Source: Pristiophorus japonicus
Taxonomy: Eukaryota
NCBI RefSeq assembly: GCF_044704955.1
Contig: NW_027253544.1
Span: forward strand, 434,001 to 498,000
Length of the DNA: 64,000 nt
Reading direction: 5' to 3'
The notes beneath the pieces are model-generated. The model ran no database searches and was not told the origin of the DNA. It was given only the letters and a program-made list of their open reading frames with translations. Shown here in pieces: positions 10,624-64,000 of this stretch. How positions within the stretch are numbered: the first letter of the stretch is position 1; the number at the start of each line of letters is the position of its first letter. Position numbers and translations under genes: made by a program.

Positions 10624-10972
10624 GTCGAAAGACAAGTCCGGTTCTTATCCAGTCCCCAGAAGTTGTGACGGTGCCCGAGGGTGGGATGGTGAAGTTTTGG
10701 TGTACCCTGGAGAGCAGCAATGTGAATGTGGATAAATATTCTGTACACTGGTACCTCTCACAGGATAGGAAACACAAAATATTTACTCATTGTGCAGATG
10801 GCAGGGTTGACCGATCACATAGTTTCTCTGAGCGGTTCCAGCTCTCCAGAGATGATGCCAGTAACAGCTACATTCTGACCATCAGAGGTATGCAGCGCAG
10901 AGACAGCGCTGTCTATATCTGTGGTATTTTGGGGAATAATCTATGGAAATGGAACCCGGCTGAAAGTAACCA
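10624..10972 (+). pseudogene. Germline-joined VJ immunoglobulin-superfamily exon V1 (+1 frameshift in CDR3)
   Basis: cacag/ acceptor; PVLIQSP..WC..VHWY..RFQLSRD..YILTI..DSAVYIC. Removing one base of TTTTGGGG (10927-10934) gives CGIWGIIYGNGTRLKVT then A/gtaagt; exon is 349 nt = 3n+1. Confidence 0.9.
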
Positions 10973-23819: not shown

Positions 23820-24164
23820 GTGCAGTTGTCCCTGTCCTGACCCAGTCTCCGAGCCTGGAACGTGTCACAGAGGGTCACACGGCGCGGTTACAGTGCACCA
23901 TGCGGAACGCCAGAGTGAGTGACACTGATGTCCACTGGTACCGGCAACTACCGGGGCAAGATACGGAGTGGGTTTTAACACATGAGGCAAGTGGCAGCAC
24001 ACGAGGGAGCCCAGGTTCCACTGACCGTCTCCAGCCTTCCAGAGACATCTCCAATAACAGCTTCATTCTGACAGTCACAGACGTGCAGCCCAGTGACACT
24101 GCCGCCTATTACTGTAAAGTGTGGGGCGATATCAGCGGGAGCGGAACCCAGCTCAATGTAACCA
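23820..24164 (+). CDS. Germline-joined VJ immunoglobulin-superfamily exon V2 (open, 345 nt, phase 1-1)
   Basis: ttttcccattaaag/ acceptor; GAVVPVLTQSP..LQC..VHWYRQLPG..RLQPSRD..FILTVTDVQPSDTAAYYCKVWGDISGSGTQLNVT; donor A/gtaaat. Confidence 0.93.
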
Positions 24165-24267
24165 GTAAATACAGTTTGCATTATATTAACCTGAATAGAA
24201 GGAATAACATCTTACACATGGATTTATTGATCAGTATCTGATTAATATCACAAAAACCGCTGGTAAA

Positions 24268-27044
24268 CTTAATGCAATAAGGTGGACGAATTAACTGCGC
24301 AGATAGATATTAATGGATATGATGTAATTGAGATTACGGAGACATACTCCAGGCTGACCAAGGCTGGGAACTCAATATCCAGGGGTATTCAATATTCAGG
24401 AAGGATAGACAGGAAGGAAAAGGAGGTGGGGTAGCGTTACTGGTTAAAGAGGAGATTAACGCAATCGTAAGGAAGAACATTAACGTGGATGATGTGGAAT
24501 CTATATGGTAGAGCTGCGAAGAACCAAAGGGCAGAAAACGTTCGTGGGAGTTGTGTACAGGCCATCAAACAGTAGTATGGGGGTTGGGGATGGCATCAAA
24601 CAGGAAATTAGGGACGCGTGCAATAAGGTTACAGCAGTTATCATGGGTGAATTTAATCTTCATATTGATTGGGCTAACCAAACTGGTAGCAATACTGTGG
24701 AGGAGGATTTCCTGGAGTGTATAAGGGATGGTTTTCGAGAACAATATGTCGAGGAACCAACGAGAGAGCAGGCCATCCTAGACTGGATTTTGTGTAATGA
24801 GAGAGGATTAATTAGCAATTTGGTCGTGCGAGGCCCCTTGGGGAAGAGTGACCATAATATGGTAGAATTCTTCATTAAGATGGAGAGTGACACAGTTAAT
24901 TCAGAGACTAGGGTCCTGAACTTAAAGAAAGGAAACTTCGACGGTATGAGACGTGAATTGACTAGGATAGACTGGCGACTGATACTTAAAGGGTTGACGG
25001 TGGATAGGCAATGGCAGACATTTAAAGATCACATGGATGAACTACAACAATTGTACATCCCAGTGTGGCGTAAAAATAAAGGGAAGGTGGCTCAGCCGTG
25101 GCTAACAAGGGAAATTAGTGAAAGTGTTAAATCCAAGGAAGAGGCATATAAATTGGCCAGAAAAAGCAGCAAACCTGAGGACTGGGAGAAATTTAATATT
25201 CAGCAGAGGAGGACTAAGGGTTTAATTAGGAGGGGGAAAATAGGGTATGAGAGTAAGCTTGCAGGGAACATAAAAACTGACTGCAAAAGCATCTACAGAT
25301 ACGTGAAGAGAAAAATATTAGTGAAGACTAATGTAGGTCTCTTGCAGTCAGAATCAGGGGAATCCATAATGGGGAACAAGGAAATGGCAGACCAATTGAA
25401 AAAATACTTTGTTTCTGTCTTCACTAAGGAAGACACAAATAACCTCCCGAAAATACTATGGGACCGAGGGTCAAGCGAGAAGGGGGAACTGAGGAAAATC
25501 CTTATTAGTCAGGAAATGGTGTTAGGGAAATTGAAGGGACTGAAGGCCAATAAATCCCCAGGTCCTGATAGTCTGCACTCCAGAGTACTTAAGGAAGTGG
25601 CTTTAGAAATAGAAGATGCATTGGTGGTCATTTTCCAACATTCCATGGACTCTGATTCAGTTGCTATGGATTGGAGGGTAGCTAATGTAACACCACTTTT
25701 TAAAGAAGGAGGGAGAGAAAACAGGGAATTTTTGACTAGTTAGCCTGACATCGGTGGTGGAGAAAATGTTGGAATCAATTATTAAAGATGAAATAGCAGC
25801 ACATTTGGAAAGCAGTGACAGGATCGGTCTAAGTCAGCATGGATTTATGAACGGGAAATCAAGCTTGACAAATCTTCTAGAGCTTTTTGAGGATGTAACT
25901 AGTAGAGTGGATAAGGGAGAATAAGTGGATGTGATGTATTTGGACTTTCAAAAGGCTTTTGACAATGTCCCACACAATAGATTAGTGTGCAAAATTAAGG
26001 CACATGGTATTGGGGGTAATATATTGACGTGGATAGAGACGTTGACAGACAGGATGCAAAGAGTGGGAATAAACGGGTCCTTTTCAGAATGGCAGGCAGT
26101 GACTAGTGGGGTGCTGCAGGGTTCAATGCTGGGACCCCAGCTATTTACAATATACATTAATGATTTAGACGAAGGAATTGAATGTAATATCTCCAAGTTT
26201 GCAGATGACACTAAGATGGGTGGCAGAGCGAGCTGCGAAGAGGATGCTAAGAGGCTGCAGGGGACTTGGACAGGTTAGGTGAATGGGCAAATGCAGTATA
26301 ATGTGGATAAATGTGAGGTTATCCACTTTGGTGGCAAAAACAGGAAGGTAGATTATTATCTGAATGGTGACAGATTAGTAAAAGAGGAGGTACAACGAGA
26401 CCTGGGTCTCATGGTACATCAGTCTTTGAAGTTAGGCAAGCAGGTACAGCAGACAGCAAAGAAAGCAAATGGCATGCTGGCCTTCATAGCAAGGGGATTT
26501 GAGTATAGGAGGAGGGAGGTCTTGCTGCAGTTGTACAGGACCTTGGTGAGACCACACCTTGAGTATTGTGTGCTGTTTTGGTCTCCTAATTTAAGGAAGG
26601 ACGTGCTTGCTATTGAGGGAGTGCAGCGAAGGGTCACCAGACTGATTCCCGGGATCCAGAAGAATGAAGGGAGAATCTCATAGAGACATATAAAATTCTG
26701 ACGGGACTAGTCAGGTTAGATGCAGGAAGAATGTTCCCAATGTTGGGGAAGTCCAGAACCAGGGGTCACAGTCTAAGGATAAGGGGTAAGCCATTTAGGA
26801 CCGAGATGAGGAGAAACTTCTTAACCTGTGGAATTCTCTACCAGAGAGAGTTGTTGATGCCAGTTTATTAGATATATTCAAGAGGGAGTTAGATATGGCC
26901 CTAACTGCTAAAGGGGTCAAGGAATATGGAGAGAAAGCAGGAAAGGGGCACTGAGGTGAATGATCAGCCAAGATCTTATTGAATGGTGGTGCAGGCTCGA
27001 AGGGCCGAATGGCCTACTCCTGCACCTGTTTTCTATGTTTCTAT
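24268..27044 (+). mobile_element. CR1 LINE, nearly complete ORF2 with frameshifts
   Basis: APE endonuclease and RT motifs in ORFs 24505-26683; tail ttctatgtttctat. Confidence 0.95.
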
Positions 27045-27063: not shown

Positions 27064-27106
27064 GCAATGAAGGAATTGGATCAGTCCATATACAGTGAGC
27101 TTAAAG
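27064..27106 (+). CDS. Candidate cytoplasmic exon with ITIM-like motif (AMKELDQSIYSELK)
   Basis: cctgtcag/ acceptor, AAG/gtatgt donor; SIYSEL fits S/I/V/L-x-Y-x-x-L/V. Confidence 0.55.
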
Positions 27107-52345: not shown

Positions 52346-54200
52346 AACCACACTGCCAATTTTTGTATCATCTGCAAACTTCTTAATCATACCCCCTACA
52401 TTAAAGTCCAAATCATTGACATATACCACAAAAAGCAAGGAACTGAGTACTGAGCCTTGCGGTGCTCCACTGGAAACAGCCTTCCAGTCACAAAAACACC
52501 CATTGGCCATTAATACACTTTGCTTCCTACATCTGAGATTTTTTGGATCCTTTATTTCTTCCTTTTTCCTCAACCATGGATGCCCCTCTATCATGGTTAA
52601 CATGGCCCTCAACTGTGTCCATTCTATTTCCCTCATTATTCCCCAACCTGCTCGACCTTTCTTCATGTGACAATCCCTTCATCTCAGGAATCAACCTCGT
52701 GAACCTTCTTTGAACTGCCTCCAATGCAAGTATGTCCTTTCTTAAATAAGGAGAGCAAATCTGTACGCAGTACTCCAGGCGTGGTCTTACCAACACCCTG
52801 TACAGTTGTAGCAGGACTTCCTTACTGTTATAGTCCATCCATTTTGCAATAAAGGCCAACATTCCATTTGCCTTCCTAATTATTTGCTGTACCTGCATGC
52901 TATAACCTTTTGTGTTTCATGTACAAGGACCCACAGATCCCTCTGTACCGCAGCATTTTGTAATCTCTCCCCATTTAAATAATAATTTAATATCCTTCAG
53001 GACTGGGGCAGCTTGGTCAGTAGTGGTGCTACCGAGCCACTCTTGGTGATGGACATTGGAGTTCCCCACCCAGAGTACATTCTCTGCCCTTGCTGCTCTC
53101 AGTGCTTATTCCAAATGGTGTTCAATATTCAAGAGTACTGATTCATCAGCTGAGGGAGGGCAGTCGGTGGTAATCAGCAGGAGGTTTCCTTGCCCATGCT
53201 TGACCTGAAACCATGAGACTTCATGAGGTCCTTAGTCAATGTTGAGGACTCCCAGGGCCACTCCCTCCCAACTGTATACCACTATGCCATCACCACAAGT
53301 GGTTCTATCCTGCCGGTGGGACAAGACATACCCAGAGGTGGTGATGGAGGAGCCTGGGACATTGGCTGATAGATTTGATTCCGTGAGTATAACTGTCAGG
53401 TTGTTGCTTGACTAGTATGTGGGACAGCTCTCCCAATTTTGGCACAAGTTCCCAGATGTTAGTGAGAAGGACTTTGCAGGGTTGGCTGGGCTGGGTATTC
53501 CTTTGTCGTGTCTGAAGCTGGTGCTGAGGTAGATGCTGGGTGGTCTGTCCGGTTTTATTATTATTACTGTTTTTAGAGCCTAGTTAAGAGTTAACCATAT
53601 TGCTGTGGGACTGGAGTCACATATAGGCTAGACCGGGTAAGGGCGGCAGATTTCCTTCCCGAAAGGACATTAGTTTAGGTTTTTACGACAATCATGGAGT
53701 TTCATGGTGACCATTACTGACATTAGCTTTTTATTCCAGATTTTATTTATTTATGTAATTACTGACCGAATGCGATCAAGCTTGACTCCTAAATAGGAGG
53801 GTTTTGGGCATGGTTTACCTCAGTGCTGCAAAAGGAGACTTGATGGGTGTTGAGGTGGAATGAGGAGATGTCAGTCTCTTGATTTGTCCGAAGTTGCCAT
53901 CGGTGGAAGTAAGCCTCCATTCTCTGTAAACAACTGGTAAGGGTCACTTCGGTGATGGACAGCCTCTCCAGCACTTTATAACTAGTACAGAGGAAGGAGA
54001 TTGGGCAGTAGCTGGAGGCTTCACAAGTGTTCTTCCCCTGCTTCAGGAGGGCAATTAATTTAGTCTCCCTCCAAACCAGTGGAATTTTACCGGTTGCCAG
54101 TACCTCAGAGAAGGAGATCAACCATCTCTTCGCTTTGGGTCCCACCATCTGGACCAACAGCTTTTCCAGGTTTGATTGTCGACAGGGTTATTTTTGTACT
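52346..54200 (-). mobile_element. Patchwork of old LINE fragments (CR1 52346-52990; endonuclease-type remnant ~52995-53780; RT fragment 53789-54200)
   Basis: KFADD, LEYCVQ; WRETKLIALLKQGK..SYCPISFLCTSYKVLERL. Confidence 0.7.
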
Positions 54201-54232
54201 GACTTAAGACTGGATCAAAATTCTGAAACAAA

Positions 54233-58078: not shown

Positions 58079-58292
58079 CTGAAGGGTTGGTTTGATTTGG
58101 CTTAACTCATTATATTGACATGAATTGCTATATTGGCATCAATCACTAACTTAGTTTGAATTACTATATTTGATATAGTTACCATGTATGTCGAGTTGGA
58201 ATCCGCTTGAAGATCACTTGATTTCTGTAATTTAAAACAAATGTTTGGAATCAGACTGAATCCATTAACTGAGTCCATGTAGCTTGTCTGTC

Positions 58293-58592
58293 TCATCGGA
58301 GAACTCTGCAATGGGTGGTGTGATCTAATCTGTGAGACAGGCTTCTGAAATGAAGAGAGTAACTCTCTCTGATATTTGCCGTGATACTTCTCCACATGGC
58401 TACAGATTGGTACAGGCAGCTTTCTCCGTGGGCCATAGATGGAATGGCAATATCTGCTCCATCACTCCTCTGAAGCCTGAGGTGGCTCACATGCACCTGA
58501 TCCTTGGGCCTGAACGTCACTGCGAATATAGCAGATGCTGTAGAGCTTGGTGCCCGATGCAGGGTGTAATAAGCCTGCAGCTGAGCCCTAGT
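58293..58592 (-). CDS. Receptor cytoplasmic terminal exon (phase 0, 99 aa; QAYYTL, CLYQSV, ESYSLH)
   Basis: Acceptor ctctctcactcacctgacag/, open 100 codons to TGA, phase matches the upstream exon. Confidence 0.65.
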   Translation of the reverse strand, partial: TRAQLQAYYTLHRAPSSTASAIFAVTFRPKDQVHVSHLRLQRSDGADIAIPSMAHGESCLYQSVAMWRSITANIRESYSLHFRSLSHRLDHTTHCRVLR

Positions 58593-58754
58593 CTGTCAGG
58601 TGAGTGAGAGAGGCTTTTAAAATGGATTCTGCTTTTTCACCTACAAAGCACATATATTCTGCTTGTTTCACTTAAAACAGCATGTGTTCTACCTGCTCAA
58701 AATAAACCCTGTCCAAGGGCAGTTGTGATAGCTGCTGATGTTGCCCCCATAAAG

Positions 58755-59940
58755 ACATGACATAGGATTACATCGGATATATGGCACAGAAACAGGCCAT
58801 TTGGCCCAACCAGTCCATGCCAGCGTTTATGCTCCACTCGAGCTTCCTCCCATCCTTCCTCATCTAAATTTATCAATATTACCCTCTATTCCCTTCTCCC
58901 TCATATTGTCTGGCCTCCCCTTAAATACATCGATACTATTCGTTTCAACCACTCCCTGTGGTAGCGAGTTCCACATTCTCACCATTCTCTCGGTAAATAA
59001 ATTTCTTTTGAATTCCCTATTGGATTTCTTGATGGCTATCTTATATTGATGGCCTCTAGTTATGCTCTTACCCACAAGTGGAAACATTCTCTATCCACTC
59101 TATCAAAACCGTTCATAAATTTAAAGCCCTCTGAGACTACCCCTCAGCCGAAGTTTTTCAAGAGAAAAGAGACCTAATCTGTTCATTCATTCTTGATAGG
59201 TATACCTTGCATTTCTGGTATCATCTTGTAAATCTTCTCTGCACCCTCTCCAGTGCCTCTTTATTTCCTTGTTATGATATGACGACCAGAACTGTACGCA
59301 ATACTCTAAGGGTTAGAAATTCAATTTTGTTTTAATACCGCTATGACTCTGCTACTGCTACGAGGCCTAACATTCAGGATAAAATGCGCCCAGGGGTAAA
59401 AATCGGCGTTGCACAAGGATTCGTGGCGCAAATCGCAAATTTGCTGCAACTTTCCTCCGAGGCCGATACCGCTACGAGTTGGGCCTAGGGAGGGTGGAAA
59501 ACACCCCCAAAAATTGCAAAAGAATAAAAAAAATCACAAGATACTTAGCTATCGAAAATAATTTAAAAATAAAAACTGTAACTTACCTTTTTTGCAGGTC
59601 TTCATACCTACCGCTGTTCCAAGGGCTGCAACGCAGACGGGAGCGCTGAGAATCAGAGGACACAGATTTAAGGTGATTGACAAAAGAACCAAAGGCAACA
59701 TGAGGGAAAGCTTTTTTACGCAGCGAGTGGTTGGGATATGGAATGCGCTGCCTGAAAGGGGGGTGGAGGCAGATTCAGTTATGGCTTTCAAAAGGGAATT
59801 GGATAAGGACCTGAAGGGAAAAAAATTGCAGGGCTACAGGGAACGGGCGGCTGTGTGGGACGAGCTTAAGTGCTCTTCCAGAGAGCCAGCACAGGCTCAA
59901 TGGGCCGAATGGCCTCCTGCGCTTTAACTATTCTATGACT
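58755..59940. mobile_element. Intronic CR1 3' fragments (58755-59308 minus; 59648-59940 plus) and a MITE remnant (59309-59648)
   Basis: TRGH..FFTQRVV..WNSLP motifs and tails. Confidence 0.8.
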
Positions 59941-60239
59941 CGAATTGGAAAAACTCAGTGTTTCAACTAGTGTACTGTATAAGGGCTTCATTGGGTTTCC
60001 TTTTAAGGTAAGATGTTGACACTATGGTCTAAAGGGATGTGGGCATGAAAAACCTCAAGCCAGCAGAAGTGTTGTATGCAGGATGCAGAGTAAGGGCTCT
60101 ACTCAGGTCAGGATCTGCAGAGCTTGTATATTGAGACCACGTTCCCAACAAATAGTTCTGTGTATTTGGACCAATGCAGTGGTGGGAATTGGGAGTTCTC
60201 TGTATGAAGGGAGTCCTATGTTACCGGCCTGATAGTTAC

Positions 60240-60578
60240 CTCCTTGGAGAGATGAGGTTTAATCTGTCTTTGGTTTGCATAGAGTTCAGAACCAGTCGGT
60301 GCCAATAAAGTCTTGTTGCTGGTTGGTGGTGCTAAATTCTTAAAGGGTAAAAAGCGCCTCGGTGATGATTGGTGCTGGTGACCTCTTGGTGCCGACTGAT
60401 GCTGGTGAGTCCATTGTGTTGGTTGAAGTTGCTGATCCTTCAGTTCTCGGCAATGCTGGTGTTTCTCAAGCACTTGTTCAGTCTTGCTTTGTCCTGAAAT
60501 GAAGCGTCTAGTTTGGTATTTTCTGGAGGTACATGCTTCTCTGTTGGCAGATCTCAACTCCTTGGGCTTCTGGGAAAA
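60240..60578 (-). CDS. Receptor cytoplasmic exon (phase 0-0, 113 aa; contains ELYANQ)
   Basis: Strong acceptor tttcttgctttccttttttcag/, donor GAG/gtaact; only phase 0 is open. Confidence 0.75.
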
Positions 60579-60661
60579 CTGAAAAAAGGAAAGCAAGAAA
60601 TCCAGATAGGTCACTTTAGGCAACAGCATATTTGGTACTTTAGTGTCTCTCAACAATCTAA

Positions 60662-60925
60662 GGTGTCTGTCTTGGCTCAGTTGGTAGCACTCTCATCTCT
60701 GAATCAGAAGGTCGTGTGTTCAACATAAGAACATAAGAATTAGGTACAGGAGTCGGCCATTTGGCCCCTCGAGCCTGCTCCGCCATTCAGTAAGATCATT
60801 GCTGATCTTCGACCTCGACTCCACTTTCCCGCACTATCCCCATATCCCTCGATTGCCTTAATATCCAAAAATCTATCGATCTCTGTCTTGAACATACTCA
60901 ACGACTGAGCCTCCACATTCAAGTC
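60662..60925. mobile_element. tRNA-derived SINE head interrupted by a CR1 tail (60723-60917, minus)
   Basis: tggctcagttggtagcactctc..gaaggtcgtgtgttcaa (A/B boxes); ttcaa repeated on both sides of the insert. Confidence 0.7.
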
Positions 60926-61607
60926 TAGAGAACGATCTCTGTGCTGGAACGGACAGGCCCAAAGCTCACCCAATATCGGGCTTCTCATTTACACCAAACC
61001 GACGAGCTGCAGACACCTACTCGGATCTCCCCAGGCAGCACGGCGTTGAAGAGTATTTGAATTTGTGGTTACTGCATCAGGTATAGGTCTCGGGAGAAGG
61101 GGATGTGCCCGGGAGAGGGGGGAATCTGGACAGGTGGGTGGGGGGGCACTCCTGCACCTGTCGGCTCCACATTCATGAAAGCATTTATTTTAAACTTGCC
61201 CTTTTGCTGGTGGCCTCCAGCGGCTCCATTGAGGGGCGCTGGTTAGGCCGCAGGAAAACCTGGTTTTCTTGAATGTAGCCGGCCTGGTGCCAGCTGTGTT
61301 CAGGCAAACCAGTTTGGTAAAGGAAGCATCAACCAGGCACTCGGCCCCTGATTTGCAAATGCAAAGGACTAATGGCTGTTTCAGACGTGGGCCTTGGATG
61401 CCTCTTTTGATGCCTATACCAATATGGTGGGCGGCGCACACCCAACGTGGAATGTACACGTGCTGCTTGACCACTACACTGGACATTTTGGCGCCCGTTT
61501 TATGCCTGTAAAATGGATTCAAAGTCATCGAATTTCTAGGCCCTAATGCTTTAAATACTCCAGAACATTAACAAAAGGCTGGCACTGGGCCAACCAACTC
61601 GACTCAC

Positions 61608-61681
61608 TTGTGAGCGTCCGGGAAGAGAGGTATTTTTATAATCGCGTGCTGGCAATGTAGTAGCAGTGTGGACAGACGGGG
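61608..61681 (-). CDS. Receptor cytoplasmic exon (phase 1-0; SPSVHTATTLPARDYKNTSLPGRSQ)
   Basis: Acceptor gatttcctttacag/, donor CAA/gtgagt, 74 nt bridging phase 1 to phase 0. Confidence 0.75.
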
Positions 61682-62201
61682 CTGTAAAGGAAATCACAGA
61701 ATGTCACCAACACCGAGTGTAGATAGGAACACGCAAACATGGAGGTTGGGGAAAGTCCATTGCAGTCCATTGGGTGGTCCCAAAGTTCACAAAAACCCAA
61801 ACTGTACTGTCGTCCATAGCCCAAAACACTTCTTTCACCAAAAGAATCTACTCAGCTCCCTCTTGAATTCACTAATACTCTCACCTTTCAATGACTGAAA
61901 CAATAGAAAAATACTAAGCATGCTGGAAATCTGAAATAAAAACAGAAAACGCTGGAAATACTCACAGCACCTATGAATGCCCATCTTTCCCTGGCTGTGT
62001 ACTTGCTTAAAAACTGTCCATCTCTAACCCCTTCCAGTTCTGACAAAAGGTCATCATCCTGAAATGTTAACTCTGTTTCTCGCTGCACAGTTGCTGCTGA
62101 TCTGCAGAGTATTTCCAGTATTTTCTGTTCTTATCCCTTCAATGACTATGGGCAGCTGATCCAGATGTGGTAGTTACCGTGAAATATTTATTTAAACGTA
62201 C

Positions 62202-62336
62202 AGGATTGCAGTTTCCCGAACCATGCCTGTCTGATACAGAAGACAAGAGCAACTCCAGCAATGAGAGTAAGTCCCAGCACAGCCCCCACACTGATCCAGA
62301 CAATCCTCAGGTCTTCATCCATTTGGACATTAGGAT
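62202..62336 (-). CDS. Transmembrane exon (phase 1-1): NPNVQMDEDLR-IVWISVGAVLGLTLIAGVALVFCI-RQAWFGKLQS
   Basis: Acceptor ccctctcactttcacag/ 142 nt after the V3 donor; 24 uncharged hydrophobic residues with GxxxG; donor T/gtacgt; 135 nt. Confidence 0.88.
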
Positions 62337-62478
62337 CTGTGAAAGTGAGAGGGACATGTAAGGGACTGGACTAACAGAATAAGGTATTTGCCATCAAATA
62401 TTGGACCTTTACCAGCCCTGATCCACAAGGTGATGTCAGACGCAGATATAATATTATTACAATGTGAACTGTACTTAC

Positions 62479-62804
62479 TGGTTACATTGAGCTGCTCCCA
62501 CTGATATCTCCCCACACTTTACAGTAATAGGCGGCAGTGTCACTGGGCTGCACATTTGTGACTGTCAGAATGAAGCTGTTATTGGAGGTGTCTCTGGAAG
62601 GCTGGAGACGGTCAGTGGAACCTCGGCTTCCTCGTGTGCTGCCACTTGCCTCATGTGTTAAAACCCACTCCATATCTTGCCCCGGTAGTTGCCGGTACCA
62701 GTGCACATCGGTGTCACTCACTCTGGAGTGCCGCATGGTGCACTGTAACCGCGCCGTGTGACCCTCTGTGACACGTTCCAGGCCCGGAGACTGGATAACT
62801 ACTC
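62479..62804 (-). pseudogene. Germline-joined VJ exon V3, close paralogue of V2, with a 12-nt and a frameshifting 7-nt deletion
   Basis: Acceptor ttccccttaaag/, donor A/gtaagt; 326 nt = 345-12-7; gggagc[ggaaccc]agctc deletion gives TAA just before the donor. Confidence 0.92.
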
Positions 62805-63689
62805 CTTTAAGGGGAAAGGAAAGATAGAAATAGCTTGAAGACCATCGACAGATGGGGAGGTGTCCTACGTGCTTAAATGCAAAGCACAATATTGCATTGT
62901 TCAGCAAAATCAATTCCAATAATTAACTAGTAGAGTTAGTTAATTACTAATTCATGAGAAGAGAAACCTTTTAATGCAGAGCTTGTATTGAACTGTTGGC
63001 ACCATTGGGAGATTTGAACTCATGACGGGTTGCTAGTCTAGTCCCATAACCATTAGCCTAGCGGTTACTGTACTGGACAGTCTCCTTCCAATCAGTAATG
63101 ATAGAAGGATTCATCTGTAGTGCCATCAAGCGACACCTACTCATTAATAGCCACCTCTCTTTCCGTTGAGTTTCCACTTCAGCCATTCAGCTCCAGATGT
63201 CATAACAGCCTTGATGCAAACATGGACACAAGGCAGCTTTCCAATCTGTATGGCACCAAAGAGCCTCAACAAAATTAGGTAAATGGCCTGTAGCTGAGGC
63301 CATACCTAACACACAGGAAGATGTTTTGGTTGTCAGAGGACAATCATTTCAGCCCTGGGACATTATGCTTCGTTCCTTTGTCCCAACCATCTGCAGCTGC
63401 TTCATCAATGAATTTCCCTCCATCATAATGTCAGAAATGGGGCTGTTCACTTGTGATTTCCACAGCAGACCCTGGACTACATCTAGGCTTGGGTTGACAT
63501 TTGGCAGGTAACATTTGTGGCCTATCAATTGGCGCATTGAATTTACAATCCTCTTCCTCGCTGGAAGAGGAACCAGTGCTGTGGTGTAGGATTTAAATTC
63601 ACATCATGTGGGGGGGCGGGCAATGAAAGAACAAGATAAGGAAACAGAAAGGAAAGAAAAATGGACAAGGAATGTAGGAATAAGGAGTG

Positions 63690-64000
63690 GCCGTAGGTTC
63701 TATTAAGTCGGCCTGAGATGGCAGGCGGGGCCTCAGTTTAATGTTCATCTGAAAGACGGCACCTCCGACAGTGCAGCACTCCTTCAGTACTGCCCCTCCA
63801 ACAGTGCCATACTCCCTCAGTACTGCCCCTCCAACAGTGCCATACTCCCTCAGTACTGCCCCTCCGACATTGCAGCACTCGCTCAGTACTGCCCCTCTGA
63901 CAGTGCCATACTCCCTCAGTATTGCCCCTCCGACAGTGCAGCGCTCCCTCAGTACTGCACCTCCAACCATGCAGCACTCTCTCAGTACTGCCCATCCGAC
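63690..64000 (-). repeat. Deu/SacSINE1-like SINE core with a 33-bp tandem expansion (~7 copies, runs off the window)
   Basis: Minus strand gtgctgcactgtcggaggtgccgtctttcagatga; unit cagtgccatactccctcagtactgcccctccga. Confidence 0.8.

Follow-up and report, generated by a model that had tools for sequence, protein, structure and literature searches.

Does the sawshark Pristiophorus japonicus carry in its germline a working receptor whose antigen-receptor-type V domain is already fused to a J strand and sits directly on a signalling membrane anchor? The question is raised by a minus-strand locus in a 64,000-nt stretch of its genome (NW_027253544.1, 434,001-498,000, plus strand, without runs of N), which we call the window and whose positions serve as coordinates throughout. 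A sequence-only reading had seen there an intact gene of five exons, namely one VJ exon, a transmembrane (TM) exon and three tail exons. Our analysis suggests, with a probability of roughly 0.65, that the locus is a decayed member of an elasmobranch multigene family of germline-joined (non-rearranging) VJ-domain type I membrane receptors. Judged by its letters, the sawshark copy is a member of this family by descent and not an intact gene; being a broken copy, it matters because it points to the family, not as a gene that works. Never-rearranging single-exon VJ genes are actively sought as relics of antigen-receptor precursors (PMC12227049), and sharks do have a clustered family of non-rearranging VJ domains on membrane receptors, annotated only as "uncharacterized". 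To this the locus adds a long-tail subfamily, common to lamniform sharks and the sawshark, in which YxN motifs of Grb2 type are conserved, an exchange of V type and tail type between members, and copies that decay or lose their V domains.

The V exon and the exons behind it

The V exon of the locus, V3, lies between an acceptor AG at 62806-62805 and a donor GTAAGT at 62478, and its main frame is a V-set domain (Pfam E 5e-17) that reads …LQCTM…HWYRQLPGQ…DTAAYYCKVWGD. V3 is 92.8% identical in nucleotides to an intact paralogous exon of the window, V2. Relative to V2 it is missing 12 nt near its start, in frame, and 7 nt (CGGAACC) within the J-like strand, between 62495 and 62494. The 7-nt deletion shifts the frame, which consequently ends …YYCKVWGDISGSSSM, running through GDISGSSSM straight into a TAA at 62484-62482, and the J-like QLNVT sits in a different frame. 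Thus the family trait of a J-like G strand (GxGTxLxV) fused within one phase 1-1 V exon is absent from V3 as it would be translated. Because the stop stands 3 nt ahead of the V3 donor, the canonical sites should give no V-bearing product, and we conclude from the predicted splicing that the sawshark copy cannot make a V-bearing protein by that route. The fully consistent phases that the sequence-only reading had described do not hold, since the length of the V exon is not a multiple of three and its frame runs into the TAA.

Behind V3, after an intron of only 142 nt without a C-domain exon, comes the TM exon, which encodes a stalk (PNVQMDEDLR) without Cys, a 24-residue uncharged hydrophobic core and a juxtamembrane Cys, and which holds an internal Met codon at 62322-62320. 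A V-less TM-plus-tail protein starting at this Met is at most what the sawshark copy could yield. The reading frame remains open through the TM and tail exons, and these exons or a near-identical duplicate of them are transcribed. Pfam places no family on any tail exon, and within the window the TM and tail exons have no paralogues; V exons alone are repeated.

Six shark proteins anchor the assignment of these exons. Two are "uncharacterized proteins" of P. japonicus from other loci, P0006 (UPI00398F8A69) and P0007 (UPI00398F8952); two are from the basking shark Cetorhinus maximus, P0008 (LOC144690012) and P0012 (LOC144689975); and two are from the great white shark, P0013 (Carcharodon LOC121274305) and P0014 (Carcharodon carcharias LOC121275259, an "uncharacterized protein" of 422 aa). 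The TM exon is 90% identical to P0006 and 56-61% to P0008, P0012 and P0014, and tail exon 3 is 79% identical to P0006 and 43% to P0014. Exon 4 matches P0006 at 98%, P0007 at 96% and P0014 at 46%, and among 1.84 billion representative proteins phmmer found three real matches to it, P0006, P0007 and P0008 (E values 5e-66, 3e-63 and 3e-18). The exon order of P0006 confirms the splice chain from the TM exon through exon 3 to exon 4 and then continues KSSDLQADSNSIYM-NFDP…. Of the five minus-strand exons with AG/GT borders that had been proposed, V, TM, exon 3 and exon 4 therefore stand, matching annotated shark proteins, whereas the fifth does not.

Table 1. Features of the window, in the order in which the minus-strand gene would be read, followed by the plus-strand V exons.
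Feature	Position	Strand	Remarks
V3, V-set exon of membrane-proximal ("V2") type with fused J-like strand	62479..62804	-	326 nt, phase 1 at start, broken
Possible cryptic donor (a|gt)	62500..62502	-	V3-specific AGC>AGT change; putative, read from the sequence
Stalk and TM exon, PNVQMDEDLR-IVWISVGAVLGLTLIAGVALVFCI-RQAWFGKLQS	62202..62336	-	phase 1-1, AG/GT; TM uncharged
Tail exon 3, …LPARDYKNTSLPGRSQ	61608..61681	-	phase 1-0, AG/GT; first YxN motif (YKNT)
Tail exon 4, KYQT and LYANQ	60240..60578	-	113 codons; phase 0-0, AG/GT
LINE-derived cassette exon, SIAYSSGRHIITRK then in-frame stop	59206..59305	-	100 nt; joints 60240>59305 and 59206>58224, both GT..AG
True penultimate coding exon (exon 5'), KSSDLQADSNSTYM	58183..58224	-	phase 0-0; RNA-type joint lands at 58224
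True last coding exon, NFDPVLSQYKNN… then stop	54118..54222	-	tblastn of P0006 and P0007
V2, intact paralogous VJ exon, …YYCKVWGDISGSGTQLNVT	23820..24164	+	345 nt, phase 1-1; found by six-frame motif scan
V1, VJ exon of membrane-distal ("V1") type	10624..10972	+	349 nt; +1 frameshift

Relatives in other sharks and the shape of the family

A profile of P0006 and P0008 retrieved P0012 and P0013, and a search confined to P0012's TM and tail brought in P0014. It is this last protein that bears most directly on the question, since by its predicted domains it establishes that an architecture of VJ-VJ-uncharged TM-long tyrosine tail, with no C1 domain, does exist. P0014 has the TM exon type of the sawshark copy, and exon 3 and exon 4 have homologues in it (with YKNI and IYANQ), as has the terminal SIYMNFDP; it ends SIYMNFDPRY, and its exon-wise identity to the window is 43-71%. 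It differs from the sawshark copy in being intact and in having two V-type domains, the first of them partial in the model, and these are 43-50% identical to V3 and V2 (43% for V3 itself). P0012 and P0013 are complete two-V genes of the form leader-VJ-VJ-TM-short tail. V3 is 73-78% identical to the second V domain of these two proteins (78% for P0012), with YYCKVWGDISG… in common. They have the TM exon type of the sawshark copy, and exon 3 and exon 5' find homologues in their tail exons (DYANI, LIYENV); they lack exon 4, so that the tail measures about 75 aa. P0006, P0007 and P0008 have the TM exon, exon 3, exon 4 and terminal exons in common with the sawshark copy and are annotated without a V domain. 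The NCBI models of P0006 and P0008 begin in or just before the TM exon, that of P0006 at the Met which matches 62322.

The junction between V and TM is conserved across the family as …GNGTRLNI-(P)ISNLRM…ELRIVWISVGAVLG, and the stalk/TM exon containing this last block follows the last V exon directly in the sawshark copy as well. Paralogues joining a V domain to the TM and tail, whose absence the sequence-only reading had named as its refuting test, thus do exist, for P0012, P0013 and P0014 have exactly this junction. The related claim that a non-rearranging VJ unit is joined directly to an uncharged TM without a C1 domain is borne out by the exon layout of the locus and by the same three intact proteins, although V3 itself is not intact, its J strand being out of frame. 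As to the claim that the gene belongs to no described shark family, a literature search on the LOC identifiers, on shark non-rearranging V receptors and on NITR-like genes found no paper on the family, although the relatives were already present in RefSeq as "uncharacterized protein LOC...".

What sets the long-tail subfamily apart is exon 4. A homologue of this exon (…QKPKELR…KYQT…RRF..FKNLA.PT…YANQ…) is the hallmark of P0014, P0008 and P0006, and by its presence the sawshark copy belongs, on sequence grounds, to the same subfamily. Since V3 is of the P0012 kind while the tail is of the P0014 kind, V type and tail type have been recombined among members.

Why, if intact members have two V domains, does the sawshark copy show one? 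The single-VJ design that had been described probably results from where the window ends. With tblastn there is no leader or V1-type exon in the 1.2 kb from V3 up to the end of the window; because intact members have two V domains and the plus-strand exons V1 and V2 stand 12.8 kb apart, the minus-strand gene probably has its leader and first V past position 64000. Just upstream of V3, an open frame at 63600-63995 on the minus strand repeats a unit of about 13 residues in tandem (…GGAVLREYGTV…) and is probably not coding sequence but a minisatellite.

The domain itself, as modelled, is of antigen-receptor type. An AlphaFold2 model of V2 built on a six-sequence alignment reached a predicted local distance difference test score (pLDDT) of 91.5 and shows the full V fold including the G strand (residues 109-113). 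In an exhaustive structural comparison its top matches were antibody heavy- and light-chain variable domains (VH/VL), nanobodies and V domains of the T-cell receptor (TCR), with Z 17-19.5 and a root-mean-square deviation of 1.4-1.9 Å over 109-113 residues at 25-35% identity; a sequence search of the PDB agrees with this ranking. None of the V exons is followed by a visible recombination signal sequence; all of them close with a splice donor.

Transcripts, the 3' end and the tyrosine tail

Our evidence on transcripts comes from Logan contigs of one public sequencing run, the only one that contains this stretch. A 411-nt contig of depth 108 matches exon 4 over its exact extent (60578-60240) but for one base and then joins 59305, and a second contig of depth 107 joins 59206 to 58224. 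The segment between these joints, 59305-59206, is the sense-strand tail of the reverse transcriptase of a long interspersed nuclear element (LINE), exonised at about the depth of exon 4. In the observed transcript the frame would accordingly be closed by this LINE-derived exon 14 codons after exon 4. The mismatch in exon 4, at 60361, is a Pro>Leu change that P0006 and P0007 also have, while the contig over exon 3 ends at the exon's 3' boundary and is P0006-like in its letters (Arg>Pro, Asp>Asn). The sole V contig, of depth 529, has the V2 base at 8/8 listed diagnostic sites, the total depth there being equal to the depth of the variant. It is likely, not proven, that the transcripts come from the sawshark locus rather than from a recent duplicate, because the match is exact through 72 nt of the transposon-derived exon.

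The same joints bear on the 3' end of the gene. An open frame at 58592-58293 on the minus strand had been taken as the last exon, carrying YYTL, YQSV and YSLH; we reject it as intronic. It has no homologue and it lies inside the intron 59205-58225, which is bounded by the two GT..AG joints; the only contig over it, 58285-58773 at depth 8.5, runs unspliced through the supposed acceptor. After exon 4 the relatives all go on with KSSD…SIYM-NFDP, and the matching exons lie further downstream (Table 1). The first, exon 5', is 100% identical to P0007 and 71-93% to P0006, P0008 and P0014; together with the last exon it encodes TYMNFDP and with it the family tail motif S/L-IY-x-N. Towards its 3' end the last exon passes into a LINE reverse-transcriptase fragment (…GPDG…). 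After NFDPVLSQ, P0006 and P0007 read it in different frames, and the basking shark and great white proteins stop at NFDPRY, so that conservation reaches only up to YMNFDP. The tail of the sawshark copy measures about 160-200 aa. Of what had been claimed for it, that it is long and bears tyrosines, with the homologous YKNT and YANQ, remains, but the figure of about 247 aa goes, as do the three motifs of the intronic frame.

What might such a tail do? The long-tail subfamily has the YxN motifs Y(K/E)N(I/T), YANQ and YMNF, which in the sawshark copy read YKNT, YANQ and YMNF, and there is no canonical immunoreceptor tyrosine-based activation motif (ITAM) and no clear inhibitory one (ITIM). Between the sawshark (P0006) and the basking shark (P0008) the TM and tail are 55% identical overall, the conserved blocks being the TM core, LP..Y(E/K)NI.LPG, (L/I)YANQ.QI..HL and DSNSIYMNFDP; all three tyrosine blocks (3/3) are YxN and these are invariant. 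YxNx is interpreted as a binding site for GRB2/GADS SH2 domains, and in teleost CTLA4 a YxNF motif supports endocytosis (PMC11599192). The motifs thus suggest docking of Grb2 type, or endocytosis, in preference to signalling by ITIM or ITAM. In an intact member, we would expect the antibody/TCR-like V domains to bind ligand, Src-type kinases to phosphorylate the YxN tyrosines, and the phosphorylated motifs to dock Grb2/Gads-type SH2 adaptors. YMNF and YKNI would also fit a YxxPhi endocytosis signal, making internalisation possible, and because the TM is uncharged no DAP12-type partner chain would be expected.

Competing accounts, known systems and the rest of the window

The possible fates of the sawshark copy are a plain pseudogene, a V-less protein from Met 62322, or rescue via the GT at 62501-62500. 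The second of these would fit an account, unlikely in our estimate, in which the TM-plus-tail part is a functional V-less transmembrane adaptor of the LAT/NTAL kind, derived from a receptor, with V3 a mere upstream relic. The copy does have what such an adaptor might be expected to show, namely a short acidic ectodomain (MDEDL), a signal-anchor TM, the juxtamembrane Cys and several YxN docking sites. Moreover, the models of P0006 and P0008 lack a V domain and begin at the TM exon or close to it, two shark orders conserve the TM and tail to the degree given above, and an exon 4 contig of depth 108 stands beside no V3-specific contig. In the ESM Atlas the P0014 tail found only sub-threshold look-alikes (TLT-1, SCIMP, GAPT, LST1; scores <=0.83), which include small leukocyte adaptors and serve as leads only. 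However, automatic annotation may have produced the V-less starts as artefacts where V exons were broken, P0014 carries the same tail with V domains attached, and the stop-bearing LINE exon of the observed transcript removes YMNF. Nor does Pfam at E<=1 place any family on whole P0006 and P0008 or on the tail of P0014, so that homology to LAT, NTAL, LAX, GAPT or SCIMP was not found and any likeness to them is one of architecture; intron 1 shows no sign of a transcription start. More doubtful is the further proposal that a long-tail lineage with a LAT-like multi-YxN tail shed its V domains in the sawshark and the basking shark and became a stand-alone transmembrane adaptor. If true, this would be a natural receptor-to-adaptor switch observed midway, the dead V exon being left 142 nt upstream.

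Could the locus instead be a working VJ-TM receptor after all, the deletion being an assembly error or an allele, or being bypassed through the donor 62502|62501? V3 is otherwise open for 105 codons and retains its Cys, Trp and YYC, the intron to the TM exon is short and phase-compatible, and the V3-specific AGC>AGT change creates a GT from which a possible exon 62804-62502 would measure 303 nt and preserve phase 1-1. The N-terminus of P0008, …YDCVHSGVS-NLRM…, may likewise resemble the end of a V exon that meets the TM exon at the corresponding place. Nevertheless we consider this account quite improbable, as a loss of 7 nt in non-repetitive sequence is atypical of assembly error, the cryptic donor would remove the G strand that the V fold needs, and no contig has V3 letters. 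To the exact gene first described, an intact single-VJ gene of five exons ending at 58293 with a tail of some 247 aa, we give almost no credence: its open frames and AG/GT dinucleotides are indeed present, but the V exon has its stop in frame and a length unfit for the phases, and the proposed last exon has no homologue, differs from the way the relatives continue and is skipped by the RNA-type joints.

Some points also weigh against our preferred account, that of a decayed receptor gene. The 7-nt deletion is known from the assembly alone, and no independent read with V3 letters spans it. The run is not on record as RNA; we take its RNA origin from the GT..AG joints. No contig in it has the letters of V3, which is weak evidence since Logan contigs lose rare variants, though the absence of V3 RNA fits nonsense-mediated decay of a V3-containing message. 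The assignment of the contigs is uncertain as well, the exon 4 contig being one base off and that over exon 3 P0006-like, and the signalling scheme as a whole is drawn from motifs.

How does the family of the decayed receptor gene compare with known systems? That the locus is not an immunoglobulin (Ig) light chain, a TCR chain or NKp30, as the sequence-only reading had it, is upheld by the lack of a C exon, the uncharged TM and the long tail. For an Ig light chain, the likely automatic label, the TM exon 142 nt after VJ is out of place, and no C-domain match was found anywhere on the minus strand; for a TCR chain so are the missing C exon, the uncharged TM core IVWISVGAVLGLTLIAGVALVFCI and a tail of this length. 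In NKp30 the TM is charged and the tail short. In architecture, the family would seem by analogy to work most like teleost NITRs, with a tail chemistry like that of CD28/CD28H or of LAT-type adaptors. NITRs are alike in having a germline Ig/TCR-like V and a J-like strand in one exon, a type I membrane topology, tyrosine tails and clustered families (PMC2442602). They are unlike it in being bony-fish genes with a second domain of I type and with ITIM tails or a charged TM, whereas the shark family has tandem VJ domains and YxN tails. CD28/CD28H share a V domain, an uncharged TM and YxNx as key motif (GRB2/GADS site, PMC11599192), and YMNF resembles the YMNM of CD28 and the YxNF of teleost CTLA4; they differ in a single V not of antigen-receptor type, a stalk cysteine and a short tail. 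UrIg/UrIg2 and NKp30 (NCR3) are alike as elasmobranch single-exon VJ genes without a recombination signal (PMC12227049), but UrIg/UrIg2 have an antibody-like V-C1-C2-C3 build, unlike the sawshark copy with its uncharged TM, long tail and no C domain.

Decay extends to the other V exons of the window. V1 is a more distant VJ exon, with 46% identity to the V domain that comes first in P0012 and P0013. A single additional base separates its YIC from YGNGTRLKVT, so at least two of the window's three VJ exons are frameshifted. On the plus strand of the window there is no TM or tail exon of the family. The V2-like contig of depth 529 is the most abundant unique RNA-type contig in the window.

Transposon sequence recurs in and around the locus. 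The N-terminal 77 residues of P0007 match opposite-strand transposon-like sequence at 53239-53391 (+) and 59589-59684 (+), at 98% and 84%, and this RefSeq-derived model probably has a false N-terminus of transposon origin. Downstream of V2, where a TM exon would be expected, a LINE with endonuclease and reverse-transcriptase open frames occupies 24250-27000. Beyond it, at 27064-27106 (+), stands a 43-nt candidate mini-exon with AG/GT sites, AMKELDQSIYSELK, which contains the canonical ITIM SIYSEL and whose acceptor tract is formed by a transposon's 3' end.

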